Shown: positions 38,136-62,439, numbered from the stretch's first letter. The stretch: DNA of 64,000 nt from Thalia democratica (GCA_965202585.1 OZ241832.1:2852001-2916000), one strand, 5' to 3'. The notes: a model not told the origin generated them from the sequence alone. Numbers and translations are program-made.

Positions 38136-39208
38136 ATGGAAAATCCACCACTAAACAACAATCAAAGACCTACCAATGCGACAGAGGTGAGTAAAAAATA
38201 ATTTTTATTGAGTTAATTTTTTGTACTCTGTTCTAATTTTAATCTTATCGTATACACTTAGGAACCAATTGTTTTACTTAAATAAAACAAGACAAAACTA
38301 TATTACTTTTGAAGTTTTATTAAAGTAAAGCTTTTTCAAGTACTTTCTAGTTCTTATATTTAAAATGTTAAACTGAGTTTAAAACTAATAACTTTATGAG
38401 CGATTGAAATTAAATTCATCTTAAATTGTAACGAACAGCTCTACAGGGCGAAATATTGTTTTATAGTTAGAATCTGTAAACAAAATTCTAACAATTTGTC
38501 ACCTTATATCTGTACAAGCCTGAAACTTACATTGAACCAAAACATAACTTTAATATTTACATTTTTTGAATTGTCATACAACAGAACATTTGGAACATGG
38601 ACGCCGAGAAATTACAAAAAATTTTCGAAACGTGGGAAAATGTACTTAACAGCCTCACTGAGTTGCAATTTGTTGAGCAATATTCGATTGTAGTTATCCA
38701 ATCGATTTACGCTTATTTTGCTTCCTTCAAATCGAGATTGGATGCGAACGAAAAAAGAGTTGCTGAATACAAGCGAACGAGGCAAGCAATTGAAAGAATT
38801 AACAAAAGTCTGAAGGTTTCGGGTAAAAAACTTGAGAGGAGTAGGAGACAAGAGGCCATCGAAAATGTGCAGCTCAAAATAAGGAAGCTCAAAAGTGAAA
38901 ATAAACATATTAATACTTTGTTGTATGAGCTGGACAAAAAACAAATAAGATTTCAACAACAATATGTAGTGAAGATAGATACGTTCCGCCCAGGTCTGCC
39001 AACTGCAACGATCCAAAGTTTCACTCACTTCACAGCTGATGAGTCGCTTGTTGGTGATCAGTGTGCGATTTGTATGGAAAATTTTGAAATCGGTAGACTT
39101 ATGATGCGTCTCGACTGCGATGGTCGGCACGCTTTCTGTCAAGTCTGTATTAAAGAATGGTTTGCTGACAACAAAACATGTCCTCTTTGTAGGCATATGT
39201 TTAAGTGA
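38136..39208 (+). CDS. RING-finger protein, putative E3 ubiquitin ligase, with an N-terminal coiled-coil-like region
   Basis: Exon 1 38136-38186 (MENPPLNNNQRPTNATE, donor GTGAGT) joins in phase 0 to exon 2 38585-39208 (acceptor ACAACAG; NIWNMDAEKL...). C-terminal CAIC-x14-C-DGR-H-AF-C-QV-C-x10-CPLC. K/E/R-rich helical middle region. About 224 aa. Confidence 0.88.
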
Positions 39209-41729: not shown

Positions 41730-44700
41730 ATGGTTGAAGTTAGTCAAGTTTTGATTCTTGGTAAGTTTTTTATGTTTATTTTTTGTCAAATCTATGATTT
41801 GTTTTTACACTTAGCTTTATACTATAAAAATATTGAAAACATCAAAGAACTCGTTTTTAACGTTTTAAAAATATGTGTTTTAGTTTATACTTGCTTTACT
41901 TTAGTTAAAGCTTTTTGTTTTGATTTTCAAAGTTTTGGTAGTTAAGAAAATCTTAAAAGTTACAAAACAACAGTACCAGACTAGTTTTTTAATAGCAGTA
42001 GTAAAATAACTTAAGAGTTGTTGCATTTGAGTTTGTAAAATTTTAATTTCAGAATTTTCCGGACCTAAAAACTATAACATTATACCCAAAACTCGTTTCT
42101 TTATTAGTTTGTAAGCTTGCTTTGTAATTTAAGTTATATGCACTGAAAAAATATTTTGTCCTGCTTTTTCTTTTTTATTTGTAAAAAAATGGTGCGTGTA
42201 ATAATGGTTAAAACTAGAAGAAAAAGGTTACAGGCGTAAGGTGTAATGTGATGAAACAAAAAAAAAACGGTTCCAAATTCTAGCATGAGTTCCGATACAA
42301 ATTAGGTATCTTTTCTTCATATAGTCCGCAATTCAAGCTTCCTGACTAATTCTGAACGTCAGCTAGAAGTCTGTCATTTTTTAATTAAGTACTTCAAGAA
42401 GTTAACTTTATGCGCTTCAGTTTTATTGCAAGTGTTTTTAATAAAAAGTTGTGCAATTTAAATTAAAAAATAAAAACTTTTTTTATTGGTAATCAACGTA
42501 ATCTGCTTATAAAAGTTTAAGATTTTAAAACATTTTAATCGTCTTCTTTTACGTAACAAAGTCCTGTGTTACAAAAATATATTGTGGTATGTTTGAAGCA
42601 TAAATAAAATTTGTTTGAATTCTGATAAAATACAACGACTTAAAAAGTAGATTTTAAAAACAATACGACATACGAATTAACTTAAGGTTTATAATAGTAA
42701 GTATTATACTAGCCGGTTTCGTAAAATGACTGCCTTTGTAATTAAAAAATACTATATATGTAGGGTAAAAACAGTTCTATTTATAAACCATAAGTATTTA
42801 GCATTTGGTCATAATAAGTATAATTTTACTAAGTTTTAAACACTCAATAGCAAGACACATAAACAAGATTTAAAAGATTTTTTTAGGTAGATCTTAGAGT
42901 ATATTTTGTAAAGTAACACCATTTTTTACAAGCATTAAGTAAAACGAGCTGAGTCACTTATAAAGTGTAAGTATGTTTTAATATTACAAACTTTATAATT
43001 TAACTAAAACCACAAACAAAGTGAATTGAGTTACATGTAATAATAAAAGTTGTAAAAACTTGCTTGTCTTTCATTTAAAGGTTGTTTAAGGTTGAAGTTT
43101 TTAAAAGTACGCAATTAAACCCAAGCTTGTTTGTATAAAAAACTACAACTTTCAGTTAGTAGTTTTTAGTCGCAGTTGTATGAACTATTCAAAAAATGAA
43201 TATTTTATCTTAAACATTACAAATTTCAGTCCTATCTTGTCTTTGGACCACCGATGGCCGCATGAACCGTGGTGCAAGCGTGTTGGAAGTGACCAAGGAC
43301 AAGTGTCAGAGCGGAATACCTTTAGTGGACACCAAACCTTCAGGTTATTTCGGGTTCGCCAAGACCAACGATTTCGAATGCGAGTACACGTTTCGACCGC
43401 TAGATGTCGACAGAGGCGTTGTCATGACGGTAAATGTCGTGTACGCTAATGAGTTGGGTGGAAGTAAACAAGACATCATAATGCCAGGAGGTTTGAATTT
43501 ATTTGTATATTTATGAGCAAAATAATATACATATTCATCAATGTAATCCATAAGTTTGAAATTGTTAATCATTTTTATAGCAAATAGACCGAATGCGTAG
43601 TAATTTTTTTTACTTGTAAAAATAAAAACTAAACACTTTCTACTAAAACAAAAACTTAGTTTAATAAAAAACAATACGTAAAGTAAGAGTAAATAGACTC
43701 GGTAGAAAGTATTTGCATTCTTTTAATTTTTAAATTTTTATTAAAAACGAGCGAAATACTTTATATTATAGCCCCACTATGTTTTACAAAACCACATAAA
43801 AAATCACATAAAACCCCCTATATTGAAACAGGCAACAAGTTCCCGTACACGAAACCTTACGACGCTGGTCAGGATTACAAATACGGAACGAACTGCTTCC
43901 ACCTGGTCAGGGGAAGTACCTGCTCCTCCCAAATATCCAGGAGGTTCTGCCCTCGTGACGTCACGTACGGGGTACCCGATCAGGAAGATTTTACGTTCAG
44001 GATACCATATAGCAGCTGGAAGTTTGTGGTGTACTACCAGTTCTTCGAGTGCGATGGTACCACAAAAGGGGGTTTTACCGAGAGTGAGAGTAGTACAAAG
44101 CCTTCGGTGTTTGTTGTGAGCAGGGACGTTAAAAGTACTGAGAGTGTTTCGACTACTAAAATTAAGCCGACAACGTCTGTAACTACTACAAAGGGGGATG
44201 CTCCGGAGAATGGCGAGGAAAAAGTTACAGATAGACCAAGTTAATGTTTTTTTATTGCTTATCAAATTAAATTAAATTTTTAATCAACGTTTTTTTAATA
44301 AAATTTTCAGTTTAATTTATTTTCAATTTTATGCTAACATAAAAGTAGTAAAATGTCAAATCAAGATTTTCTGAACTTCAGACAATGATAAATAAATGTT
44401 TCTAACATGTATAGAAACCAAACACGAATTTTAGGATAAAAGATATGTCAACTAAATTTTTTCAATGCAAATTTCATAAAACAACAAAATAAATTTAAAG
44501 AAACATCCACACTAGCAATGCACAACCAAACAAAAGATAGCAGGTTTTTAGACCCATACCAACAAAATGCGAATACAAATACACTCTCCATAGTGCTTGG
44601 AACTGTTTTATTTGTTGTATCACTTCTGCTTATTGTTGTTCTCTTCACTAAAAAGTTTGTTTTAATTGTATTTAAAATTAATAGTAGTTAGTAGAAAAAG

Positions 44701-46037
44701 CTTTTCCTTTTTTTCTGTAGTAATTTGTTGAAGTTATAAAAACATTCGTTTAAACAAGGTTTTTAATAGAAGTATTATTACAGAAAGTTTTTGTTAAACC
44801 AAAACTTTTCAAGGCGGTTGTTTTTCTTATTTGTTTGGATTAAAGTTTATTTTTATTTGCCTATTTTTACTAAAAGTTATTCAACTCAAAATTTTATCAC
44901 ATTTTAAAGTTTTACAATTTTAAAACTAGATAGTAAACGTAATTCATTGATTAAGAAAAGTTTATTCATTTAATTTGCTTATTAATATGAGTTTGTTTAG
45001 TTTCATTTTTGAAATGTTTTGAAATAATTTGAATTTTTTAATGAAAGATCTCTAAATTACATAGTTCAAATAAAATTTATTTTTAAATAAGTGTCTAAAC
45101 AACTTTTAACCGTTAGACGTCGCAGTAGAAAAGTGAGTAGAACTAGTTGGCAAGGAAACAGAGTTTATGAGATGACTAATAAAAGTTGTGATGAGCCAAA
45201 TGAGTAAGTTTAAAATAAATTTTACAAACCATGATACGTGGAAGATTTACAAACTTTTTACTAATTTGACTCAAAAACTTCCATTTTTGCATAAAAAGTT
45301 ACAGGTTTTTATAAACTATTAAGTTGTATTACTTTTATTAAGTATTGCATTTTAAAATTATTTTATTTCGTTATTCTAAGTTTAAGTTATTTTAAATACA
45401 GTAAATATTAATCAGTGTAGTACACTAGATTATTATTATTATTACAAATAAAACTATCTAATTAATAACACAAACGTAGTTTTTGTAGGAAATAAATTAT
45501 ATTTACTTTTAAAATTTAGTTTATAACTAATTAGTAATCTACTGGTTTATTAACTAGATTTTTTTTAAATAAATGTAAGCAAACTAATTTAATTAGGATA
45601 AACATTAATGAATTTTATAATCCACTTTTGTTTAAACAAAAAAAAAATCAAGTTAGCCGGTTTAACTTTTCTTTGTTCAAAATAATCTAAAAATTTAAAA
45701 TAAAAATGTTTCAATTAAAAGTTAAACTCAAAACAGGCCCAAAAACGAGCTCTACACCCCGATCGAAGACGACATCAACAAAAATCCCCACGACAGCAAC
45801 CCGAATGTTAGGGAAATCCCCGCGACTCCGCAAACCCACCGCGCCCCAATTCCGCAACCCCGAACTGCGAGGGGAAAACCCTCAAGTGAAGGTGCTTACC
45901 TGGCGCCACTGACCAAACAGGAGTCTGACCAAATTTACGCGGAAATACCGGCGGGAGGGGAAATTCCCCCGATCGAGAAACCTCCGAGGAGTAGGAGGGT
46001 TCCGACCGCGTACGGGGTTGGAAATTTTAAAAGATAA
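41730..46037 (+). CDS. Orphan type I single-pass membrane protein: signal peptide, CUB-like ectodomain, S/T-rich stalk, TM helix, Tyr/Pro-rich cytoplasmic tail
   Basis: Exons 41730-41760 (MVEVSQVLIL, GTAAGT), 43230-43490, 43832-44239, about 44501 (alternatives 44516 or 44552)-44654, 45117-45203, 45737-46037; phases are consistent. Signal peptide MVEVSQVLILVLSCLWTTDG; TM LSIVLGTVLFVVSLLLIVVLF followed by TKKRRSRK; stop TAA at 46035-46037. About 396-413 aa. The CUB assignment rests on C..SG..DTKPSGYF..NDFECEYTF resemblance only. Confidence 0.85.
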
Positions 46038-47617
46038 ATAATTATTTTTTATTGAAACACTTGTTATGTATACTTTGTTAAAAGATCATTCAAACTAAGA
46101 TTATTATTATTTTTGAAAAAAAAAAAGATTTTTTTCTCTAAAAAGCTAATAATAGCTTAAATTGTTTTCAGTAGACGGAATACAACTTTTGCACATTACG
46201 TTTAGTTTGGCAAAGTTAAAATGATTAAAAATAAAGTCAATAAAATTTGAACTTTTTAAAATACTCGTCTGTTTTTTTTTTCTTTTTTTAAAAAAAGTGT
46301 TCAAACACTTATTTGTTTGTGTTAAGTTTTTATGCGTGAAATTTAGTTTTATGAACATTTTTCAAAATTTCAAAACAATTACTTATAACAACCATGACTA
46401 GAATTAAACAAAACTTTTGTCAGATTGATTGGAAAACATATCTTATTTATATTAGAAGTCTGGGCTTGAATAGTTAGAATTAAATTTTATGTGTATTTAT
46501 TTATTATTTATATAAATTATATTTACTTTGAGCTAAACAATTTAAAAAAAATTTCAAACAGTAAATACATAATGACTAAAATGGTAATTTAGCACAGTGT
46601 TTGAAGAATTTTTTAACCTACAAATTAAGTTTAAATCAATTTATTATTATGATGTTAATTAACTTTCTTTCAGTAACAAAACTGTTTAGTGCTTATCATA
46701 AAATTAGTCACTGTTACAAAGTACGGGTAAGTTTTAGTTTACCAAAAGTAGTATTTATTTCTATAACAGGTGTAATAAAGAGTTTTTCTAAATTTAAGTA
46801 GTACAGCGAAAACTACTAAGTTTTGAGCAATTAACATTAAAAAAAAAAATATATATACAGTTTTTTATAATCTTAGCTAATGTTTACGTTTAAAAAAGTT
46901 TATTTTTGACAAAAATAAAATAGGTCTTTCTCGGAATGTTTTAATGACAGTGATTATTTTTTAAATCTCATAGTATAAAAACTATTTTAAAAATATTTTA
47001 CTGATTTGTTTGTTGAAATATAAATTTAAATAAATATTTTTTACTATATTAAATCAAAGTAAGATTTTTTTTTAAATTACCATGGTAAATTTTAGGCACA
47101 AAAAAACTAAAAAAACAAAGAATAAACACACTTGATTTAAAACAAACCTATATTTTAATTCTATTTATTGTTTAATATAAAAAGTTTATAAAAAAAACTT
47201 TGTAGAACTAAACTTTGTACTGCAAATATGATTTTACATGTAGTTTTAAAACCATACTTTTGTTGTTCTCAAAATTATTTTAACCTATCAAAACTAATCA
47301 TCTTTTAAAAAATTGTTACTAGTTACCAAATAATAAAAAATTGTATAAAAACTTATTAACTTACGAATTACAGGAAATTACTCCAATTTTAAATATTTAT
47401 ATAAAATCGATAAAGAAATTCTAGTTAGAAATAAAATCTTTAAACATCATTGCTTATACTTTATGAAACAAAAAAAATCATAAACAAACTTAATACAGTT
47501 GTAGATACATCTAAAAATTGATTTTGAAGACCTATAAACTACTATATTAAAGTTTTTTATTTATTTTTTAGACATGTTTATACAAAATAACACATTTCAT
47601 TTTAACTTTAATTCAAT

Positions 47618-50600
47618 TTAAGTGAAAATTTCAACTTCACATCCGCTTTCGAAGTAAACTTGCTCAATATCAAATATATAATTATCTTCGGAATCTTGTT
47701 TTATTGTCAGTGCTCTCTGTGATAAGTACCTCTGGACACATCTGTGTTTAAATGTTTTGGCTATAAAAAGTTATATCGAAAGCGTTCAAAAGATTTTTTT
47801 AAAGCTATAAGGTTTTATAAACAACAAAAACTTTATTTAATGTGTTTTAAGTTAGAAAGTTTTGAGACTTTATCATAAAGTATTTCTGATGACTTAAGTT
47901 TTTTAAACCTAAAATATAAGCAGTGAATTTATAATTTACACATCTGAAATGTTACGGCTTTATTAGTTTAAACTTTCTTTATTATAAATATCATTTGTAC
48001 ACAAACCCTATTGGTCCCCCTTCAAATTCAGTCTGACAGACCCTGGTATCAAACCACTGGTAGTTTTCCCCGAAGTGAAAAACCTCAGTTCTGTTAACAA
48101 TCTGGTCGTTTTCAAAACCGAACCTCCTGTAAATTATTCCCGCCTCAATATCGCATATTTTGTATGCGTCTTCTGTTATAAATAAATAAAAAATTAAAAC
48201 TTGCTTAATTAATTTATTTTTTCTTCAAGATAAAGTTTTTTCTTATAAATCGCTTTAATGAACTAACAACTTATTAAAATTATTTTTTTAATTGTAAACA
48301 AAAAAAAGTATTTTTGTAAACTTTGTTAAAACATAAAGTTGAAACATCTGACTTATATTTAACAAATCTTTGTTATTTATTATGTTTTCTAAACATTTTA
48401 AATAATATGATAGTACTTATGACGTATGTACATGTTTAAAGGGTTTTACTGAAATATTGCGAGTGATTTTTTATAAAGTTGTGACTGCTAACAAAGTTAA
48501 ACAAAAGAAATTTTATTAGAAAAAAAAAAGTTGAAAGTTTATTAAATTGAATCAAATTCATAAGATTATAATAAAAGCTATATAGTAAACAACTACAAAA
48601 CAATTAAAAATCAACAAATAAGAGCTGAAAAAAAGAACAAAAATATCTTATTTGGTTTTTTGAATACCATAAACTATATACTATATATAAAATAAACGAA
48701 TAAAAATCGTGCTATATAATAAATAAATGTATACGTTAATAATTTGGAATGCTTTAAAGAAACTCCTCAAGAAAAGTATGTTAGTTAATGAATTTAAAGA
48801 ACATAAGACTTCAGGTATCGAAGCTTAAACAACTTGCTTTTACAAAAAACTTATAAAGATATTTTGAACTACTTTGTTTTTTATTAGTAAGCTTAAATTA
48901 GTATTACAATCAAGTTAAACAGAATTTTATTTAAAACAGTTGAAGCAAGAGGCTAATGATACAAAGCAATGTTTGAAGCTTTATAAAGTATAAACTAATT
49001 TTATTATTGTGGATATTATTATGTAATAATAGTTTTAGATTAATAAGCGTTAGTTAAAACATGCTATTAACTACGCCAAGCAAAAAATAGTTTTTTCATT
49101 CAGAAATAATAATAGTTAGAACAAACTTATTTATTACTTTTATAACAAGTTTAACAGCTTTGTAATTATGTTTTAATTTGAACGTTACATATCTCATTTT
49201 TCATGAAATTATACTCACACTAAAACGGAGTCAGTTTTTTAACGCAAAAAATTTAATTTCATTAAACTTGTAAAACTAACTAGTTTATTAAATCTTGTTA
49301 ATACTTTGATTTGTTTATGTCTTAGAAGATTGCAGCCACGTAAACTTAAGTTTTTAGTTAAGCAATTAAAATTGAAGCCGTGTATTTTAAGCTCTTTAAG
49401 CTTTTTTAACTTACTATCTGGGTAAAGTCCTGTACCGGTGGAGAGAGTTTGAAATATTCCGAAATTAGAGGTTTTTATGTAAAAGTTGATTCAAGCAATA
49501 AATTAAGTATTTTCTTAACACTTTATTATGTAAAATGAACTATTTATAATAAAATTTGATATAACTTAGTCTAAAAGAAAATTAGTATAATTGTAAATAA
49601 AAACAAAAATATTTAAACGGATAAAACGTAAAATATATTTTGTAAAGTGTAATAACAATAAAAATTAGTTTTTAAGTAGTATATAAATTAGACTTTAGTT
49701 AAGAATATTTAAATTAAATTAAATTGTGAGTCATAATTTAACATCAACATTTTGTTTATTTTGATATCTACTGACCTGAAACATGATAACAATGAAAATT
49801 AGTTTTCAAGTAGTATATAAATTAGACTTTAGTTAAAAATATTTAAATTAAATTAAATTGTAAGTCATAATTTAACATCAACATTTTGTTTATTTTGATA
49901 TCAACTTACCTGAAACCTGGTATAACAAAGGTTGCTTGTCTGTGGAATTCTGTAAAAGTAAAATTGATTATTTTTGCCGCATTTAATAAAAAGTTTCATA
50001 ATGTATAAAACTCACAGCAGGGCAAGCTTTTTCAAGTACTGAATCTGGAACTGTGAAAAAATACCTGGAAAAGTATAAGTTTAAATAATAAAGTATGTCT
50101 TGTGAATTACTCCAAAATAAACTATGTATTTATTTTCTAGCTTGTGGTAAGGTACTTATGATTTTTATTTCATTCAAGTGAGCCTTAAAGGCAAAAGTCT
50201 AATAACTGTAACACTTTAAATTGCAGCTATAACAAAAAAAAGCTAATAAGTCAACTTAAAAAGTAAATAAAAGTATTTATTCAAACTAGAACTATAGTTT
50301 AGCTAAATTTCAAGAAAGTTACAAGTTTTTACTACAATAACGTGTTTAAAAGTATGTACATACATAATACAACAGAAACAGTTTCCTCCGAAAAATATCA
50401 GTTAAAAAAATCTTAGTTGTTAAACTATTAGTGTACAAAAACTGTTTATTGGTAAACTTAGACATTCCTATTTAATAATAGTTTTAATATAACTTACTTG
50501 TAAGTGTTATATACAGATTGTGCTTTCACAAAATCTTCATTTGCTAATTGACAAGACAAACTTGTTGAATTTTCACATCCGGGCAGTAAACTTATTAAAT

Positions 50601-50621
50601 TGTCACATATTTCAACGTTTT
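47618..50621 (-). other. Spaetzle-like module of the EGF gene
   Basis: PGCENSTSLSCQLANEDF...YKYFF (prodomain-like), then KICDIEAGIIYRRFG...YQWFDTRVCQTE...GCVQRYLSQRALTI...FDIEQVYFESGCEV, recalling the Spaetzle C..Q.v.ve.C...C.QkY....l......d.f..Ps.C pattern. Only 4 Cys are present in the knot region. Confidence 0.55.
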
Positions 50622-53600
50622 CTGTTCAAATATACTTTGTAAGTACTAGTTAGTATTTAGAATTGTCATTTGATTATATAAAATTTTATGATTATTAACA
50701 TTTTTTTACACAACTTTCTAAAAATAAATATCAAGTTTAATAAGTCATCACAATGTTTACAGCTCAAATATTTGTTACAAATTGTTCAATTTATTTTAGA
50801 AAGTGTGTTTGTGTGTACACAAGTACATACATTTATACTGTTTTCTAAAAGTTTTATACTTAGCTTAGTTTTATTTGTTTATAAAGTTAGAAAGGTTGCG
50901 AAACAATAAGTTAAATTATGAAAAGTAGTGTTTAATTTTTATGTAAACAACAAACAAAATATTGACCTAAAAACTTTAAAGAAACGTTTGATGTATACAT
51001 AAACAATTGAAAATTTTTGGAGAAATTTTGTTTACAAATAAGTTAAAAACGATTAATAAAACCTCACCTTAGTATTTAAACATAAACAATAAAGTTTTGA
51101 AGAGAAATTCTTTTTATGTTTATGATTAATGGAATTTATCGCAATAACGTAAAATCACGTAACATTTTTAACAATTGAGTTTATGTTTATTTAATTATTT
51201 CAACTTATTGGGTGATTATAAGGTTGTGATATTTCACAAAATTTTGTTTGGTTCGAAATGCATTATATAAGTTATGAGAAAGAATTCAATTGTAATGAAG
51301 AGGCCAAAAGCAAAAGCAATTATATTTATGTTTTAAAATTTTTTTATGGTATGTTTAGTTTTTTTTTTTAATACCAGTATTTTTCAAAAATTTTAAATAT
51401 AGAAAATCAATTATTAAGTCCCGTTGATTTTTATTAAAGCATTCTTTTTAGTCGAAATGAATACTGTTTGTACTACTTTTAAAAACTATATAGTAAAAAG
51501 TTTCCTCTATTTATTCTCAAGCTATTTTATAAGAACAAGACAACAACAAACTTGGAAGCTATATGATTTTAAACATTTTGAATCATATTTATAACTAATA
51601 AACATATTGTATACGGAAATAAAAGAGTTTAAAATTTTGTAAAAATTTAATTTAGAATTATTTAGTTAAGCTTATTTATATACTTTTTGCAATACAGACC
51701 TTCACAAGTGAAACCATTTCCTTCGAAGCCATTCTTACAAACACACATGAAAGAACCTTCAGTATTCACACAATTCGCATTAATCGAACACATCACAGTA
51801 GATGGTTCAGAACATTCATCAATATCTGTTAAAATATTGATTAGTTATTTATTAACCTTTGTTCATACACTTCGCATTTATTAAAAAGTTTCAAAACATT
51901 CATTCATGCCTAAAAAATGAGCATTTATCGAGAAAATTAAAAATAGTTATCTACATCTGTTCAACTGTAGGCCGATTTACATACATATATATTAAAGTTG
52001 GTTAATCCTGTTTGATCAGTATACTTATTGGTATATAGAAATATTATTGAGATGATATGTAGAAATATGGTGTAAGGTTTATGTTAATTGAGTTATATTA
52101 ATTTGTTTTTTGTGTAGTTATGTAATTGAGTTTTCTTTGCATATATCAAGATTAAAAACCTTCATAAACCAGTTCGGTTCAATATAAGTAAAAGCTTTAA
52201 GTTTTCTTAAACTACTTTATACATACTAGACGTTATTGTAAACTTTTTATTGTATTAAGCTTAAACACTCACTCAATTTGAATAAAGCTTACAGTTAATA
52301 TTATGACTTGAAGTCTAAATACTTACTTTTTTTTTGTTTTGTAACACGATTTAACGGTAAAAGTTAAAGTTTTTACACAATAATACTTTTTATAAATAGC
52401 GTAAGATTAAGTAGCTATAGGCTTGGTCTAAATAAATAATAATGTTGTTATAAAATGAAATCAATTGCATTTGATATGTAAGAATAACAGTTTATTTACT
52501 CAAAACTTTAAAAGCAACTCTCTTATGCTTTCTTTCTAAAAACAGTGTGTGTTGGTTAAGTTTACACCAATTATATATTAGTTATATACATAACTTTTAG
52601 AACTCGAACTAAGTACAATTTTTAAAATTAACTTGAATTAATATACAAAAAATAATTAATCAACAGTAATTATTGTACAGTAGATTTATGAATACAGTAT
52701 TTGATCATTGAAATTAATACATTTTTGATCTGTTATTTATCCTAGTTTATTTTATTTTAGTCTTCAACTTGACAACTAATTGTTAATTTATTTTGTACTT
52801 AAAATAAGTGCCAAAACACTAGTTTTCAAATATTCTTTTTAACAAATTAAATAGCACATTAGCAAAAATAAAACTTACTGATGTGGTTATGTTACGTAAG
52901 CTTTGTATATTTAGTCGCTTTTGTTAAATTCAACAATATTTACTTCAAGCAAACATTATATTGAAAAAACTTTTGGTGTTTTTATTAAATCTGTGTAAAG
53001 TAAAACAAAAGAATTTTAAAACTTCAAACTTGTCTAGGTCATTTTTACTAAAACTAATTGGTTTTTATCACGTTTTGTTATTTTAATTTTACACCCTACA
53101 AAGTAAATTTAAATGAACTTGAAATTACTAAAAACAAGTAAAAGTTATTGAAAGCTATTTTTAGTACATAGGTAGAAATATCGAAGTAAACTCAAGAACG
53201 ATTGCATTTGTTATTACTTTTTACAGTTTTATTCTGTATTAAAATTTAAGTTCTATGTTTTAAAATTTGTTTTGTTAAAAAATAGACTGATTTAAAACTT
53301 AATGCAGTATTGTACTTTTACATAATCAAAAATATACTAAATAGTAATTAGTATGATAAATCAAACTATCAGACAAATAATTATAACCAGTATAACATTT
53401 CAAAATAATAATAGTAGTTTAAATAATTGAAATTTAAGGCAATTACTTTAAAAGTTACAAACCTAAACCTTAAATTTCCAACTTGCATACAAAATTATCA
53501 TAAACAAGTTTGAGAAAAACAACAATTAAACATATTTTATAATAATACATCTTTAATTATTTATACCTTCACAACGACCATCTTCAGTTTCATAGTAACC

Positions 53601-56600
53601 AGGCTTGCAAACACATTTGAACGAACCAATAGAATTCACGCATTCAGTGAACTGCTCTAGTGAACACGCACCGTCGTCAATACATTCATCGATGTCTGAA
53701 AATATTTTGATAAACAATTAAGTTTGATAAAAAACATACTTCTGTAAAAGTTTTCACTTAAAAAATCTTTTAGTAAAAAATAATCAATTATGTCGAAAAA
53801 ACTTGCAAAAGATAATGAAAATATTTTGGTAATGAAAGGTATTTTTAAACAGTTATCATAAAATCATATGTTTAAAATATTTTGTTAAAAAACATTTATA
53901 AAAATATTTTCGCTTTAAAAGTTTGCAAGTTATACTTAGCAAGCTACACCCTTAACAAATAAAGGTCGTAAGTTTCAAATTTTTATTTCAATTTTCGTTG
54001 TAATTAACATTTAAAACTTATCAATTTTCCTCTATTAATATGCTCGACCTTTTTCTAAGACTTTTGACTTTCAAAGAAGTATTTTTTCTAGATATAACGT
54101 GTAATTTCATAAAGCATACCATAAAGTAAGCTTGAATTTAAAAATTAAAAAATTTCACCGTAAAAAGTAAACAATAAGTTCCATAAGAAAAACAAAATTA
54201 TTATATTAGTATACTTACCATTCATTTATCAAGCTCATCTCAAATCAAAAAAGTCATTAAATGTACATAGGAAATTATTTAGTTTATTAAAAATTAAATC
54301 AAGCTCATCTGAACCAACCAACGCATCCGGTTTCGTTTCCGGTAAAACCCCCATTGCAAGAACAATTGTAAGAACCAATCATGTTGCTGCATTGCGAGTT
54401 GGCGTCGCACGGAAGGTATGACGTCACAATGCTTATTACGTCATCACTGATTACGTCACCGTACATTTCTTTCAAATAATTGTTTGATGTTGAAACTACG
54501 TTGTATGATTGGTAGTTCGCCTCCAACTCAATTGTGAAGTTCTGTTTGAAAAACAAAATAAAATTCTAAAAATTCACGATTTTATGATTTAAAGTGCTAG
54601 ACTAGATTTTTATTTTCTATTTATAGAAATGTTTTTAATTAATTTTAAAGTTCTACCTACTTAATTAGCCAACGAAATAAAGCAATATAATTTGATTAAA
54701 TTTGTACTTATTGTAAAATGTTATATCTATTGTTAAACATATACTTCGTGTCTATCTTGAAATACAATTTGAATGCAAAATGTTTAAATTAGAGTGAAAA
54801 TACTGTAAAAATACAAACTTGTATGTAAGTCGAGTTAATAGAGCAATCATCAAAAGAACTATTTTTTCTACAATCCATTATTTCATCTTTCCATGCATCA
54901 AAATTATTTAAAACAAAAGATTCAACACTGTCCAAAACTTCACACTCATTTGTATCTGTATAAATTTTAGTTAATTTAAATAAAAATTTGCAAGATAAGA
55001 AACTTTTAAGTTTGTTTCTGATGTTTGTTGTTAGTAGTATGTATTAGAAACATATTTAACACAGTTTATTAGTAAAAAAAACACTTTTACATGTTTGATG
55101 GCTTTAGAAAAAATTAGAAGATTTACATAAAAATGTATTACAAAGAAAATTAAAGTACATATTAAAGATTAACGCAGTGTGTATTAAGTTAAAAATAATA
55201 TTATTTTAAATTACACAAACAAAGAGAGCTTTAAAAATAAGAAACAAAACCAGCTATTCAAAAGGTCGATCAATATTTTTCTATTACAATATACTTGTTA
55301 GGACAATTTGAACGCAACTAAACTTTTACATTGTAATTGACATTCATTTTAAAGTAAGGTCATTTAAAAAGCTTACAAACATGAAACAGTTACTGTTAAA
55401 AAGTAGAAAACTACACACAAAATTTATTGAATTTATGAATAAAACTGTAATCATTCTATTATTTAATTTATGAAAATTTTCTTCTACCATTAAAGAGAGC
55501 TACTGATTTAGATTTCATTTATTAGTAGCAAAGAGTAACTATAAGTTAGTAAAAATGTTTAAAAAACTAATCAAAAAAAAAAAAGATAGTAAAAAACAGA
55601 TAATTTTTACTGTCGAATGGCCAAGTTACAAACACTTGTGTAAGTTTGAACCAAACCAAGCGTACAATACATTTATAAGGTCACTCATAAAAATAAATAT
55701 ACCCATTTTAAAGTTCAAAAATATAATAAAAATTCTTTTGTGTATACTTACAATAAACATTTAAATGTGGTCTTTAAAACGATAAATTTAGCAAATACAA
55801 CGTATAAACTATAAAAAGTATCGGTTCAATAAACAACTCATATTACCATTTTTAGAAGTTTAGTTTCAAGCTTTAAAGTATGTTATATATATATATATAT
55901 AGGTAATTAGTTCTTGTATATCTTTTTTTTCGATTCATTTAGTTACAAAAATTTAAGTTTTTATGTTTAAAAAGCACTAACAATAAACCATTAATCTCTA
56001 CAACAAATGTTTCTAAATCGGACTATTACAACAAATACACAGAACTTTGTTTGTTTTAAGATAAATAAGCTTACTATTTAAAGAAAATAAAATTATACAA
56101 CAAAGCTAGTATATAATTAAAATACCTATTAACCAATATATACAAACTAGTTACTAAGCAACCTGTGCAAGTATGGTTGTCATCTCCTGAAAAGAATCCT
56201 GTGTAACCCTGTTGACAAACACACTCGTAACTGAAATTTACGTCATTGCACGTCGCTAATACGTCACAAGGACTAGGTTCTCTGTCACATTCAAGAACGT
56301 CTGGAAAAAAAGTTCAAATATAAAACTTGGTAATTGATAGCTTTGTTTTTTTTTTTTGATATTTAACTATAAATGAAGCAATGAAACTGTATTAAACTGG
56401 TAAAGTAGCTCTAAATTTATAATTTGAAAAGTATTTTAATTTGTAATTGAAATTGAAATGGTTATTGAAAGCTTTGTTTTATTTTTTTGATTTAAAATAA
56501 ACTATAAATGAAGCAATGCAAGTATTTTAATTTTTACAGTACAGTTATTTAAGTTATACATTAGCTTAAGTATTAAGCCTTAGAATAAGTCTTATATACT

Positions 56601-58530
56601 GTATAATATGTAAACAGGTTTCCTTAAGAATAAACAAAATATTGTTTTTTAAAAAACATAATTTAAAAAGTGGTAAAATAACAAAACACTTTTTGCAAAA
56701 AAAAAAAAAAACGGCTACACTTGATATATAAAAGCGTATTTTTAATCACTTTATAATTTTTTTATATCTACTTTTTATATTTTATATATTGTAAACGTCG
56801 TTTGCGATTCTAGCATAAAAATTAACTTGAGTGTAATAGTTTAAAAAAACAAGCTATAAGTATTTATAAAAACTTTAACTATTTTTTTTAATTTATGATG
56901 TGTCAAAAATTAGTCTTATCACGTGTAGTTATTACCAGGTTTATAACTTAATGCCAGAAAGGTTTTGTTTATAAACTTAAGTTAAATTTTTTCCTCAATA
57001 CATTTTTTTTATTAATTTTTGCAAATTTGAAATTATGAAACACCTTCTATACAATGCTAATAAAGTTGTAAATTTGATTTTATGCTGTACTAGACCAGTC
57101 AAACCTTCAAAAGTAGCCGATATGTTTATTGCTAAGTTGTAAGACTTTATGCTAAACACATTTTGTTTATAAAACTCAAGTTAAAGTTTTTTCTCAATTT
57201 TATTTTTGTTAAAAATGTTTGAAATTTATTTCTTTTAATTTTTTAACTTTACTTTGTTTTTTTCACATTGCTATTTTAGTTTAAAAGTTTTTATTTATAA
57301 ATAGTAAACCAGTCAAACCTTCAAAAGTAGCTGATATGTTTTGTTCGTTTAACAACTGCTGAAGCTGGTAAATTAGTTCAGGGTCATCAAAAGATATTAT
57401 GACGGCTGCGAAAAAAAATAGAATTTAAAATAAATATTTTTATCAATTTAAATTGAAATAAACAAACTCACATGAATCTGGTCCAAAGCTAATGCTCACA
57501 GCTGTAAAATTAAAAACAAATTAACTCTTTTAATTAGTTTTATAACTAGGTATATGTTTATCTCAGTATTAGACATTTAGCTTCTATATTTCGAAATTGA
57601 GATTTAGTTTTTACATAAAGATTAATTAATAATAGCAAATAATAAAAACTAGGTTGTTAAACTAGTAAAATGATAATATAATAATATAATAAATAATATA
57701 ATAATACCTAATACTCAAAGCTCATATATTTAGATATAGAATTTCGAGGTTCATAAATAGATTAATTGCTAACAATGAATGTTAAAAATTAAGTCCATTC
57801 GTAGAAGCTTGATACGAAAAAAAGAAACGGTCTTAAACTTACTTAAACAAACAAAATCAACTTAAAAAACTATAAAAAAGAATTACTTAAAACATCTCGG
57901 CTTAACATTCTTAATCGTTGTAATCCTACTTAATATGTTAACGCGAAAAGATTTATTTAAGTGTTATAACAAATTCTTACGTGACACTTTAGCCAGACTA
58001 CTTAAACTAGTTTTCCTATATATATATAAAGTAAGAATATACTTTAGGTATGAATATTAAAAACTAAAGTGCTTGAAGTTAATTTAAAAAAATAGTTTGT
58101 GTCTGTAACTCTTGCGTAAATCAAAAAAATTACAGGAAAACCTAACCTAAGTAATTAAATCTAATTTCTACTCAGGTTTTATTTAGTTTTATATCTTCGA
58201 AAGAAATAAATACTTAAAACGAGTTGAAATACAGGTAGTAAAACCTCTTAAAACCTTTTTTTTTGAAAAATTATTCAACTTATACTATATTCTTATAGTT
58301 ACAAAACGTTATCAAACTAAATTTTAACAAGTTATAGGAGTTAGAACTTTAACAAGTTTACCAAAGTTCTAACATAGTTTTATCAAGTAAATAAAATAAT
58401 TTAAAGATCATTTAACAAATAAATCAAACATAAACAAACTTGTATTTGAATTAAACTGCGCATTCGAGCTAGAAACAACAAAAACAGTTAAAAAAACAAC
58501 TGTCAGAAAACCATTTCCGAAAAATTTCAT
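47618..58530 (-). CDS. Secreted protein with four Ca-binding EGF-like domains and a C-terminal Spaetzle-like (prodomain plus cystine-knot-like) module
   Basis: Exons (minus): 58530-58440 (signal peptide MKFFGNGFLTVVFLTVFVVSSSNA), 57501-57472, 57405-57310, 56300-56163 (EGF1), 54955-54819 and 54541-54319 (split EGF2), 53695-53567 (EGF3), 51825-51700 (EGF4), 50621-50498, 50064-50016, 49949-49910, optional 49429-49415, 48172-48007, 47741-47618 (TAA). All GT-AG with consistent phases; 490 aa (495 with the microexon). cbEGF consensus D-[IT]-[DN]-E-C...C.N..GS[FY].C.C..G[FY] is clear. The Spaetzle call is pattern-based. Confidence 0.88.
49650..49930. repeat. 134-bp tandem duplication including an EGF-gene donor junction
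   Basis: Two near-identical copies of AAAATTAGTTTT.AAGTAGTATATAAATTAGAC...TTTTGATATC.AC..ACCTGAAAC. Confidence 0.9.
56335..56530. repeat. Short intronic tandem duplication (about 130 bp)
   Basis: AGCTTTGTTTT...AACTATAAATGAAGCAATG occurs twice. Confidence 0.75.
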
Positions 58531-58534
58531 TTCC

Positions 58535-58720
58535 AAGTAAATTGATACGAATGTCAGCGATGTAAAATTACAACCTTACAAAAACCCGAGCGCATGGTAA
58601 TTTCCACGAGCTAAACATCGGCATTATGACGTCACAAACATGTTTTCTCGTCACTTTCTCTGCGCCCTTTTGTTGGGTGAATTTTTTCTCGCGTGTTTTT
58701 TTAAGAAGTTGGGGCGCAAA
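58535..58720 (-). promoter_or_regulatory. Probable promoter/5' region of the EGF-Spaetzle-like gene, with a CRE-type palindrome
   Basis: CpG-rich patch just upstream of the ATG at 58530; TGACGTCA at 58627-58634. Confidence 0.5.
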
Positions 58721-60700: not shown

Positions 60701-61606
60701 TTATAGTTCATTCTGACTAGCATCGGTTATCTGACTAGTGCCGGTTATCTGGGTAGTATCACTTGTTTGCGTGGCCACCGAAATTCCGCTTGCGGTGCTC
60801 GACAAGCGTTTTTTCACACCTAAATCATCAGACTCTATTTTACCGGCATCAATCACGTTATTCGATTTACCGATCAAAAGTTTAATCTGCTCCAACAGCT
60901 CCTTGTTCCTCTTACAACCGTCATCGTCACTATCGGAAGTATCCGAGGAATCTGAGCTCAGGCACCCCAAGTTCCTGCTGTCCCTCAAAATCGCCTCGCA
61001 CTTCTCCTCCAATTCCCTCTTCTCTCTCTTGCGCCTCCTGGCGTGTGAGTCCGGAAAGCAGCTCAGGTTCTCCCTCAGCCTCGAGTAGCTCGTGCTCGGT
61101 TGGTACATGGGGACGCAGTTGACGTGCGGGGGCAGCTTGGGGTTGAAGGGGCTGCAGTTGTAGAACCACTGCGGCATGTAGCACAGGTTGTCGAAGGGGG
61201 GTAGGGGGCACGCGGGGAGCATTCCGTGATCGTACTTGTCTCTCGTCTTCTCCTCTTTCGTGTGCTCCTCCTCCGTTGTCGTCTTCTTCTTGCTCTTCCT
61301 GCTGAACTTTGACTTCATCCTGGAGAACACCGACGTCTTGCTGGACTTTGCCGATTTGCCCGAGTTCACCGATTCGTTGGACGTCCTGGTTTTGTTTTTT
61401 GTGGATTTTTTTCCGGATTTCACAGATTTACCAGAATTCAGAGACTCATTAGATTTGGTTTTGTTTTTTGTGGAAGTTCCGCCTTTCTGTGATGCATTTT
61501 CGTTTTCTTCTATCGTTTCCAATTTGCTCTTTTTTGTCGAGTCTTTCGTTTTCTTTATCGACTCTTTTGATTTTTTTGTTGACTCTTTGGTTTTGCTCTT
61601 GGTCAT
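60701..61606 (-). CDS. Uncharacterised intronless Lys/Ser/Thr-rich protein (301 aa) with a central Cys/Pro-rich segment
   Basis: 906-nt ATG-to-TAA ORF in DNA where random ORFs rarely exceed about 100 codons; GC-rich coding-like composition; internal repeats TKNKT(K/R)..SNES(L/V)NSGKS.KS. No family recognised. Confidence 0.8.
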   Translation of the reverse strand: MTKSKTKESTKKSKESIKKTKDSTKKSKLETIEENENASQKGGTSTKNKTKSNESLNSGKSVKSGKKSTKNKTRTSNESVNSGKSAKSSKTSVFSRMKSKFSRKSKKKTTTEEEHTKEEKTRDKYDHGMLPACPLPPFDNLCYMPQWFYNCSPFNPKLPPHVNCVPMYQPSTSYSRLRENLSCFPDSHARRRKREKRELEEKCEAILRDSRNLGCLSSDSSDTSDSDDDGCKRNKELLEQIKLLIGKSNNVIDAGKIESDDLGVKKRLSSTASGISVATQTSDTTQITGTSQITDASQNEL

Positions 61607-62439
61607 GGTTTAGTTTAATTAAGCATGTGTGGTGACATTTATAGTTTTTCAAACAAAACAAACGGACAAATTACCACAATTTATTTTTTTCTCTAATTTA
61701 GATAATTTATTATAGTTATGACGTTGCTCCCATTTAAATTTATGTAAAAACAATTATTTTTCAAATTTTTATTTTAGTAAAAGTGATTTTTTTTTAAATT
61801 ACTGCATAACTATTGCTTATGATGGTTAATACTATTAATTTTATTTTTTTTTAACGTTGTTACATTATTATTGCTTTTCAATGGCTGTTTTAATCACTAA
61901 CTTTTAGACAAATGTGTTATTAAGTTAAAGGTTTCATAGCATAAATTAACGCAATGTAAGCATAATATTTTTGTCTAAAATAATCATGCAAAAGTAAATT
62001 TTAAGAATAATGATTAGATTAGTTTTTATTTATTAAGTCTTTAATCATGTGTATACACTTTTTGCGAAAGTGAACAATACTTGATTTTTAACAACTTTGT
62101 ATATTCTTTTTTAGTATTTTAATTATAGTTTTCTAAAGTTTACTTTACAGCATTAAAAAAAGTTCTTAATCTTTGTTTTCACCGTTTTAAGACTTACAGA
62201 GCACAAGAAATAAGCACAATTTTATTTAAAGTATATTGTTTCAATTTAAGTGTTCCTCAGCTATTTTTATGATTCAAAGTAAACTTAGCATGACAAGGAT
62301 ATTTTTTTTAACATCACTTTAATAAAGATGTTAGTTAAGATAAAAGGTGAAACTTGTTGATAAGATTTGTATGTACAATAGTTTAGTGAAACAATTTTTT
62401 GTATAAGCATTGATGAAATAAGTTAAATATAATTTTAAA

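Follow-up and report, generated by a model that had tools for sequence, protein, structure and literature searches.

What does a protein do that carries an array of epidermal growth factor (EGF) domains and ends in a cysteine-rich module of no familiar kind? The question is raised by a minus-strand gene in a 64,000-nucleotide stretch of Thalia democratica DNA (GCA_965202585.1 OZ241832.1:2852001-2916000; hereafter the window, from whose first letter all positions are counted), which an initial annotation had read as a secreted fusion of four calcium-binding EGF (cbEGF) domains with a module like Spaetzle and the neurotrophins. Our analysis points, through several independent, individually weak but agreeing lines, to a fold of the nerve growth factor (NGF)/Spaetzle type in the last ~100 amino acids (aa), which we consider probable. 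The explanation that best accommodates the whole protein, and which we favor by a modest degree, is an EGF stalk bearing a two-disulfide NGF/Spaetzle-like end-piece that would act as an attached dimeric ligand.

The gene lies where it was first proposed to lie, running from 58530 to 47618 on the minus strand, but in 12 coding exons rather than the 13–14 claimed. All borders are AG/GT, the phases are consistent, and the spliced product comprises 476 aa with 34 Cys, including as spliced every string quoted in the initial annotation (PGCENSTSLSC, YKYFF, KIC, YQWFDTRVC, GCVQRY and VYFESGC).

Transcripts corresponding to this gene were found in marine metatranscriptomes. Two runs of 2025 from 'organism A' contained 95–98% of the sequence words and presumably represent the source DNA. 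Read contigs from run X1, placed on the 3' half only (47500-51900), covered the exons and left the introns empty; because these contigs are ~95% identical to the window, their source is a very close relative or a population variant. They join EGF3 to EGF4, 50498 to 50064, 50016 through a 40-nt exon (49949-49910) to 48172, and 48007 to 47741, the last of these reading ..GPIGCVQRY.. across a split Gly codon; for the join from the EGF4 exon to 50621 there was no direct X1 contig evidence. A 1597-nt mRNA contig from the Tara Oceans metatranscriptome (L001), retrieved by phmmer with exon 11, encodes a 487-aa protein (P0001) that is 81% identical to the gene model at the amino acid level and collinear with it throughout, start codon to final residue of the window's protein. 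The 5' end of L001 aligns to 58573-58440, and the pieces of this contig placed on the window by blastn end no more than a few bases from the model's exon ends. A spliced orthologous mRNA thus confirms the gene model over its whole length, and the exons at 48172-47618 are indeed joined to the EGF exons, as the first reading required. P0001 also has 10 extra residues after exon 1, for which a search of the window found no counterpart exon. A common 5' leader, as a sign of trans-splicing, was sought on the three mRNA contigs and not found.

The gene product is a secreted, N-glycosylated extracellular protein, with modules in the order signal peptide, short N-terminal motif, EGF1, EGF2 (split), cbEGF3, cbEGF4 and a C-terminal part of ~166 aa holding four plus four Cys. 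Exon 1 (58530-58440) supplies the start codon and the signal peptide (MKFFGNGFLTVVFLTVFVVSSSNA, followed by Q...) and ends in phase 1, and exon 2 (57405-57319) encodes the N-terminal motif (..ISFDDPELIYQLQQLLNEQNISATFE), which is found in all four family members described below. In a Kyte-Doolittle scan with a 19-residue window, only the N-terminal signal peptide exceeded a mean of 1.6; because there is no second hydrophobic window (the next best reached 0.86), the protein has no transmembrane helix. The predicted signal peptide, four EGF domains and lack of a membrane anchor were thus borne out, with Pfam EGF_CA/EGF_3 matches in all four EGF domains.

EGF1 occupies exon 3 (56300-56163; DVLEC..., six Cys; EGF_3 1.1e-7, EGF_CA 1.3e-6), EGF2 exons 4 and 5 (54955-54819 and 54541-54319, together with their intron 54955-54319; DTNEC...), cbEGF3 exon 6 (53695-53567; DIDEC...; EGF_CA 1.2e-10), which X1 contigs join to exon 7, and cbEGF4 exon 7 (51825-51700; DIDEC...; EGF_CA 1.2e-11, EGF_3 5.4e-12). 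The motif D-x-(D/N)-E-C is present in three of the four, the DVLEC of EGF1 being a marginal calcium-binding motif. Against the EGF_CA profile (PF07645; cut-off 27 bits), EGF3, EGF4 and EGF1 scored 41.9, 45.1 and 28.9 bits, and EGF2 scored 25.6 bits on its C-terminal half, owing to an insert of ~85 aa between its Cys1 and Cys2. This insert holds two further Cys, is conserved in P0001, P0003 and P0004 but missing from P0002 (family members described below), and has a ratio of nonsynonymous to synonymous substitution (dN/dS) of 0.11; it is an old, constrained sub-domain rather than a local oddity.

Exons 8–10 (50621-50498, 50064-50016 and 49949-49910; with introns, 50621-49910), linked in part by the X1 joins given above, encode a 4-Cys piece predicted to be helical and then a variable linker. 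The putative NGF/Spaetzle-like domain takes up the last two exons: its first half (KIC...YQWFDTRVC...GGPI-G), with the Cys labeled C1 and C2, is in exon 11 (48172-48007), and its second half (G-CVQRYLSQRALT...YFESGCEVEIFT, then stop), with C4 and C5, is in exon 12 (47741-47618).

A separate feature of exon 2 is a 77-nt direct repeat (57051-57127 versus 57265-57341; 75% identity, the last ~37 nt nearly perfect), whose copy at 57051-57127, situated 214 nt further along the intron, reproduces the 3' end of the exon with its GT donor and the first part of that intron. With an AG just upstream, this echo would give an exon of 27 nt that keeps the frame and repeats ..NISATFE; in the L001 mRNA the motif occurs a single time.

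When exon 11 was compared exhaustively by phmmer with 1.84 billion representative proteins, only four matched at E <=0.001 (P0001, 487 aa; P0002, 357 aa; P0003, 752 aa; P0004, 536 aa), all from marine metatranscriptomes. All four share one plan, consisting of a signal peptide, the same N-terminal motif, an EGF array and the same C-terminal part, so that an EGF array joined to the putative knot module, an architecture that the initial annotation had suggested seeking in related genomes, is present in each of them. The number of EGF modules per member is 3, 4, 5 or 11 (the ortholog P0001 has four EGF_CA stretches). Other searches did not enlarge the family: a word-index search with exon 11 gave no match, two scans of JGI metagenome contigs gave no relative, none of 889 candidates from a search with alignment A1 was a stand-alone relative of 92–294 aa, and a search for the region with P0004 returned P0002 and no further members. 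The family is lineage-restricted, and its combination of EGF array and end-piece belongs to no named family, as first supposed; a Pfam scan of the C-terminal ~170 aa likewise gave nothing above threshold. Two metagenomic contigs from the P0002 species (L004:584-1069 and L005:235-720) carry the two final exons, separated after ..GPIG by an intron of the same place and phase as in the window gene. Since these contigs have 23% GC and keep the intron site, the family belongs to related AT-rich genomes.

Conservation is concentrated in the C-terminal part, which has eight invariant Cys and the invariant strings QWF, PIGC, Q-R-x-L-x-Q-x-A-L and ESGCEV. The four Cys of the end-domain are invariant in 13 sequences from four lineages, and residues of its surface loops are invariant too. 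Relative to L001, dN/dS for the whole protein was 0.097, with dS saturated (~1.1); by part, the EGF region had values of 0.11–0.16, the helical 4-Cys piece 0.09 and the final 87 residues 0.035. With the lowest dN/dS, this end-piece is the functional core of the protein.

The 4-Cys piece ahead of it (PGCENSTSLSC...YKYFF) has four invariant Cys, and residues 22–44 of the model are helical. It had been taken for part of a Spaetzle prodomain, but it matched neither a Spaetzle prodomain nor any Pfam family, and we treat it as a conserved, probably helical portion of a C-terminal unit peculiar to this family. Variability is highest in the linker that separates this piece from the first knot Cys. Across the four family members this linker has no basic or furin-type site that is conserved at -7 to -15 relative to that Cys, the region in which Spaetzle and proneurotrophins are cleaved, and because of this the proteolytic release from a matrix tether that was originally envisaged is an unsupported guess.

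Which known proteins does the end-piece resemble? Spaetzle (PF16077) was the only Pfam family matched by shorter C-terminal pieces, and it was matched three times in the same register: by the window's last exon (residues 2–37 on profile positions 61–93 of 96, E 0.083), by the P0003 domain (profile 31–93, E 0.095) and by the P0001 tail (E 0.14). These alignments place Cys 2, 3 and 4 of the domain close to positions 41, 62 and 92 of the profile, with ~10 profile positions skipped between 41 and 62. We take positions ~41, 62 and 92 to be C2, C4 and C5 of the Spaetzle knot, with C3 in the skipped stretch. A Val stands two residues after the last Cys, at the C6 site, in every family member. From these profile positions we infer that the domain's Cys are C1, C2, C4 and C5, which fits the set of four knot Cys named in the initial annotation. 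Because C3 and C6 are the two partners of one disulfide and are missing together, the pattern has the look of a tolerated disulfide loss. There is precedent for such a loss in the superfamily, as IL-17 types T1B and T1C each lost one knot disulfide (PMC11087794).

Language-model features agreed with the Pfam register. The ESM-Atlas neighbors of P0001:385-487 were Spaetzle clusters (0.91; 193 of 256 features shared), followed by NGF, IL-17 (0.85–0.88) and Noggin, with the ten best all in one clan, and the last exon alone had Spaetzle, NGF, IL-17 and Noggin clusters as neighbors (0.80); the calibration behind these feature scores was made on whole proteins, not protein parts.

Structure models were built with AlphaFold from family sequences of the four lineages, with no Spaetzle or NGF sequence in the input, and contain a pair of beta-hairpins, of which the second is very long. 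Searched against the Protein Data Bank (PDB) with Foldseek, the domain model retrieved BDNF/NT-4 first (E 0.17–0.56, TM ~0.4 over 110–115 columns), and when candidates were re-aligned, 17 neurotrophin entries had Z 4.2–5.2 while PDGF, IL-17 and VEGF reached at most 2.4. A Foldseek-independent alignment to 48,161 PDB representatives gave only eight chains with Z >=2, led by NGF (Z 4.8 and 4.4, over 82–84 of 105 residues), with coagulogen next (2.6); a Z of ~5 is middling by the alignment tool's own notes. The order among AlphaFold DB Swiss-Prot entries was Drosophila Spaetzle, NT-4, coagulogen, NT-3 and Spaetzle-4. Among AlphaFold DB clusters an uncharacterised 201-aa protein (E 5.9e-3, probability 1.00, 28% identity over 87 residues) ranked first, ahead of several entries with a Spaetzle or NGF domain. 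A shape search of the Atlas gave TM 0.53 to both an NT-4 cluster and a Spaetzle cluster. The longer 168-aa model had only weak PDB matches within the cystine-knot families (PDGF, IL-17 and TGF-beta) and no meaningful match in the Atlas.

A number of points weigh against placing the end-piece among these cytokines, in addition to the whole-protein calibration and the middling Z scores noted above. No sequence comparison was significant: the Spaetzle scores of 13.2–14 bits are below the gathering threshold of 27; P0002, P0004 and the 168-aa pieces had no Pfam Spaetzle match; and alignments A1 and A2, used as profiles, matched no PDB sequence at E up to 10. Single-exon phmmer searches of PDB sequences gave a chance lectin match only, NGF (PF00243) was not matched at E up to 10, and Pfam IL17 (PF06083) was not matched. 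The two AlphaFold models are of low confidence (mean predicted local distance difference test score, pLDDT, 46.7 and 48.0), both staying below 50 because the alignment is limited to four lineages, and Foldseek E-values against PDB and Swiss-Prot were all >=0.17. Dimerisation, disulfide pairing, absence of cleavage and receptor binding are, moreover, all things that we infer. The Spaetzle/neurotrophin-like module proposed at the outset is thus supported for the last ~100 aa as a resemblance, through lines of evidence that are individually weak, and is not supported by any significant sequence score; likewise, of the checks suggested for it, the Pfam search stayed sub-threshold at 14 bits, and the AlphaFold and Foldseek comparisons placed NGF and Spaetzle at the top from a low-confidence model.

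If the likeness is real, the end-piece would have the two-hairpin fold of the neurotrophin, Spaetzle and coagulogen cystine-knot cytokines and would keep the C1–C4 and C2–C5 disulfides, with C3 lost in a loop ~10 residues shorter and C6 replaced by Val. With C3 and C6 lost, it would lack a closed knot ring. By analogy with NGF and Spaetzle it may form a parallel dimer, which would be non-covalent because the even count leaves no unpaired Cys for an interchain bridge, and the same analogy would make it the receptor-binding end. Because no conserved basic processing site precedes it, the ligand may act while still on its two EGF stalks, as a dimeric and probably matrix-associated molecule rather than a released cytokine.

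The same fold could instead have a structural role, the end-piece dimerising or assembling a matrix or mucus-net protein with no receptor signaling, as the CTCK domain does in mucins, von Willebrand factor and Slit. This alternative, the main rival, which we hold to be unlikely yet deserving of attention, would suit a domain that always sits on EGF rods of very different length (3–11 modules), as expected of a spacer plus dimeriser, and the lack of a conserved cleavage site also speaks for it. A specific partner, however, better fits the invariant surface loops and a dN/dS of 0.035 set against 0.11–0.16 in the EGF rod, and the structural matches are to NGF and Spaetzle, not to knots of the CTCK/TGF-beta type. 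Fibulin-type and CTCK-type readings of the module itself were considered and rejected, as neither has Pfam or structural support.

Quite unlikely, in our estimate, is a new fold with no relation to the cystine-knot cytokines, in which long beta-hairpins, a few Cys and chance motifs would create the likeness. The sub-significant sequence scores, the low confidence of the models and the failure of the 168-aa model to find a meaningful Atlas match are what such a fold would produce, but five comparisons of a model built without Spaetzle or NGF rank the same superfamily first, clearly above other hairpin-rich folds, and the language-model features and the sole Pfam match agree with this independently of the model. 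We regard as very improbable a place in the IL-17/Trunk/PTTH branch, that is, an IL-17 "T1C"-like ligand (3/6 disulfide lost) fused to EGF domains. The Cys pattern, with 1/4 and 2/5 kept and 3/6 lost, equals the T1C type of invertebrate IL-17s (PMC11087794), and IL-17 clusters are among the Atlas neighbors at the values given above; IL-17 chains, however, reached Z 2.1–2.3 compared with 4.2–5.2 for neurotrophins, and Pfam IL17 never matched. The reported loss of T1 types in tunicates and vertebrates (PMC11087794) also speaks against this branch, an argument that counts only if the genome is that of a tunicate.

Comparison with characterized systems shows where an EGF-stalk protein with an NGF/Spaetzle-like end would stand. 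The Spaetzle family comprises Toll receptor ligands, best known from arthropods, with seven Cys, six of them in the knot (C1–C4, C2–C5 and C3–C6) and one for an interchain bridge. Like Spaetzle, the gene product is secreted and has a C-terminal domain of ~100 aa with C-x-Q-x-Y after the third conserved Cys and a Cys near the C-terminus, and Spaetzle is its only Pfam match, its nearest family by language-model features and its first AlphaFold DB Swiss-Prot match. Unlike Spaetzle, it scores half of the family cut-off, has four Cys in the end-piece with no counterpart of the C3–C6 bridge or the interchain Cys, lacks the conserved Arg, just ahead of the knot domain, at which a serine protease removes the Spaetzle prodomain, and in the place of that prodomain carries its EGF array and the helical 4-Cys piece.

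The neurotrophins (NGF, BDNF, NT-3 and NT-4; PF00243) provide the best PDB structural matches, over 80–87 of 105 residues, and we take the strings ..Q-W-F-x-T-R-x-C before the second Cys and ..A-L-T after the third to be neurotrophin-like motifs. The end-piece differs from them in having no Pfam NGF match, two disulfides rather than three and no dibasic furin site, and in being fused to EGF repeats. The T1B and T1C types of IL-17 resemble it as functional ligands with two of three disulfides, T1C having lost 3/6 (PMC11087794), whereas the similarity, both structural and in sequence, is weaker than to NGF/Spaetzle and IL-17s are small, stand-alone proteins.

In overall plan, a repeat rod ending in a dimer-forming knot domain recalls Slit, gel-forming mucins and von Willebrand factor, which have C-terminal knot dimerisers of CTCK/TGF-beta type; knots of that type, however, rank far below NGF for the end-piece. 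The short fibulins (fibulin-3/4/5) are secreted cbEGF arrays in which one cbEGF has a long insert and a non-EGF module closes the C-terminus, and our protein shares the array, the single insert-bearing EGF and the non-EGF end. It differs from them in having no fibulin C-terminal Pfam match and a module that appears Cys-bridged and NGF-like.

Around the gene, a perfect CRE-like palindrome (TGACGTCA) lies at 58627-58634, ~55 nt upstream of 58573, where the L001 alignment has its 5' end, and could be a promoter element. A convergent neighboring gene on the plus strand (41730-46037; coding-looking segments at 43.1–46.0 kb) has its 3' end ~1.6 kb away from the stop of the EGF gene. Two long uninterrupted open reading frames were seen elsewhere in the window: 38570-39205 on the plus strand (212 aa, coiled-coil-like), and 60704-61609 on the minus strand (302 aa, rich in Lys, Ser and Glu), in a GC-richer island (35% GC). 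The window as a whole is very AT-rich, at ~24% GC compared with a published range of 28–42.7% for tunicates (PMC13746493).

The biological interest of the locus depends on whether the fold is as proposed. Neurotrophins and Spaetzle link nervous-system and immune signaling across animals, and their history is patchy outside vertebrates and arthropods. Ciona, an ascidian tunicate, is reported to lack a neurotrophin system (PMC2772990), and we found no paper on Spaetzle in tunicates. A far-reaching proposal, to our minds rather unlikely, is that pelagic tunicates keep a true but unrecognised descendant of the ancestral neurotrophin/Spaetzle ligand, permanently fused to a cbEGF stalk, without the ring disulfide, and signaling as a matrix-anchored dimer through a receptor of p75-like or leucine-rich-repeat type (Toll- or Trk-like); on this view the uncharacterised 201-aa protein of AlphaFold DB would be a stand-alone relative. 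Should the fold fail, the gene would encode a secreted EGF protein of ordinary, lineage-specific kind whose C-terminal domain is of no known type. If the fold is true, the protein would give the superfamily a new architecture, in which the cleavable prodomain is replaced by an EGF array, and a second case besides IL-17 of a working ligand scaffold minus one knot disulfide. It would also provide a concrete candidate ligand in animals of the pelagic plankton, in a family of some evolutionary interest if the tunicate assignment holds.

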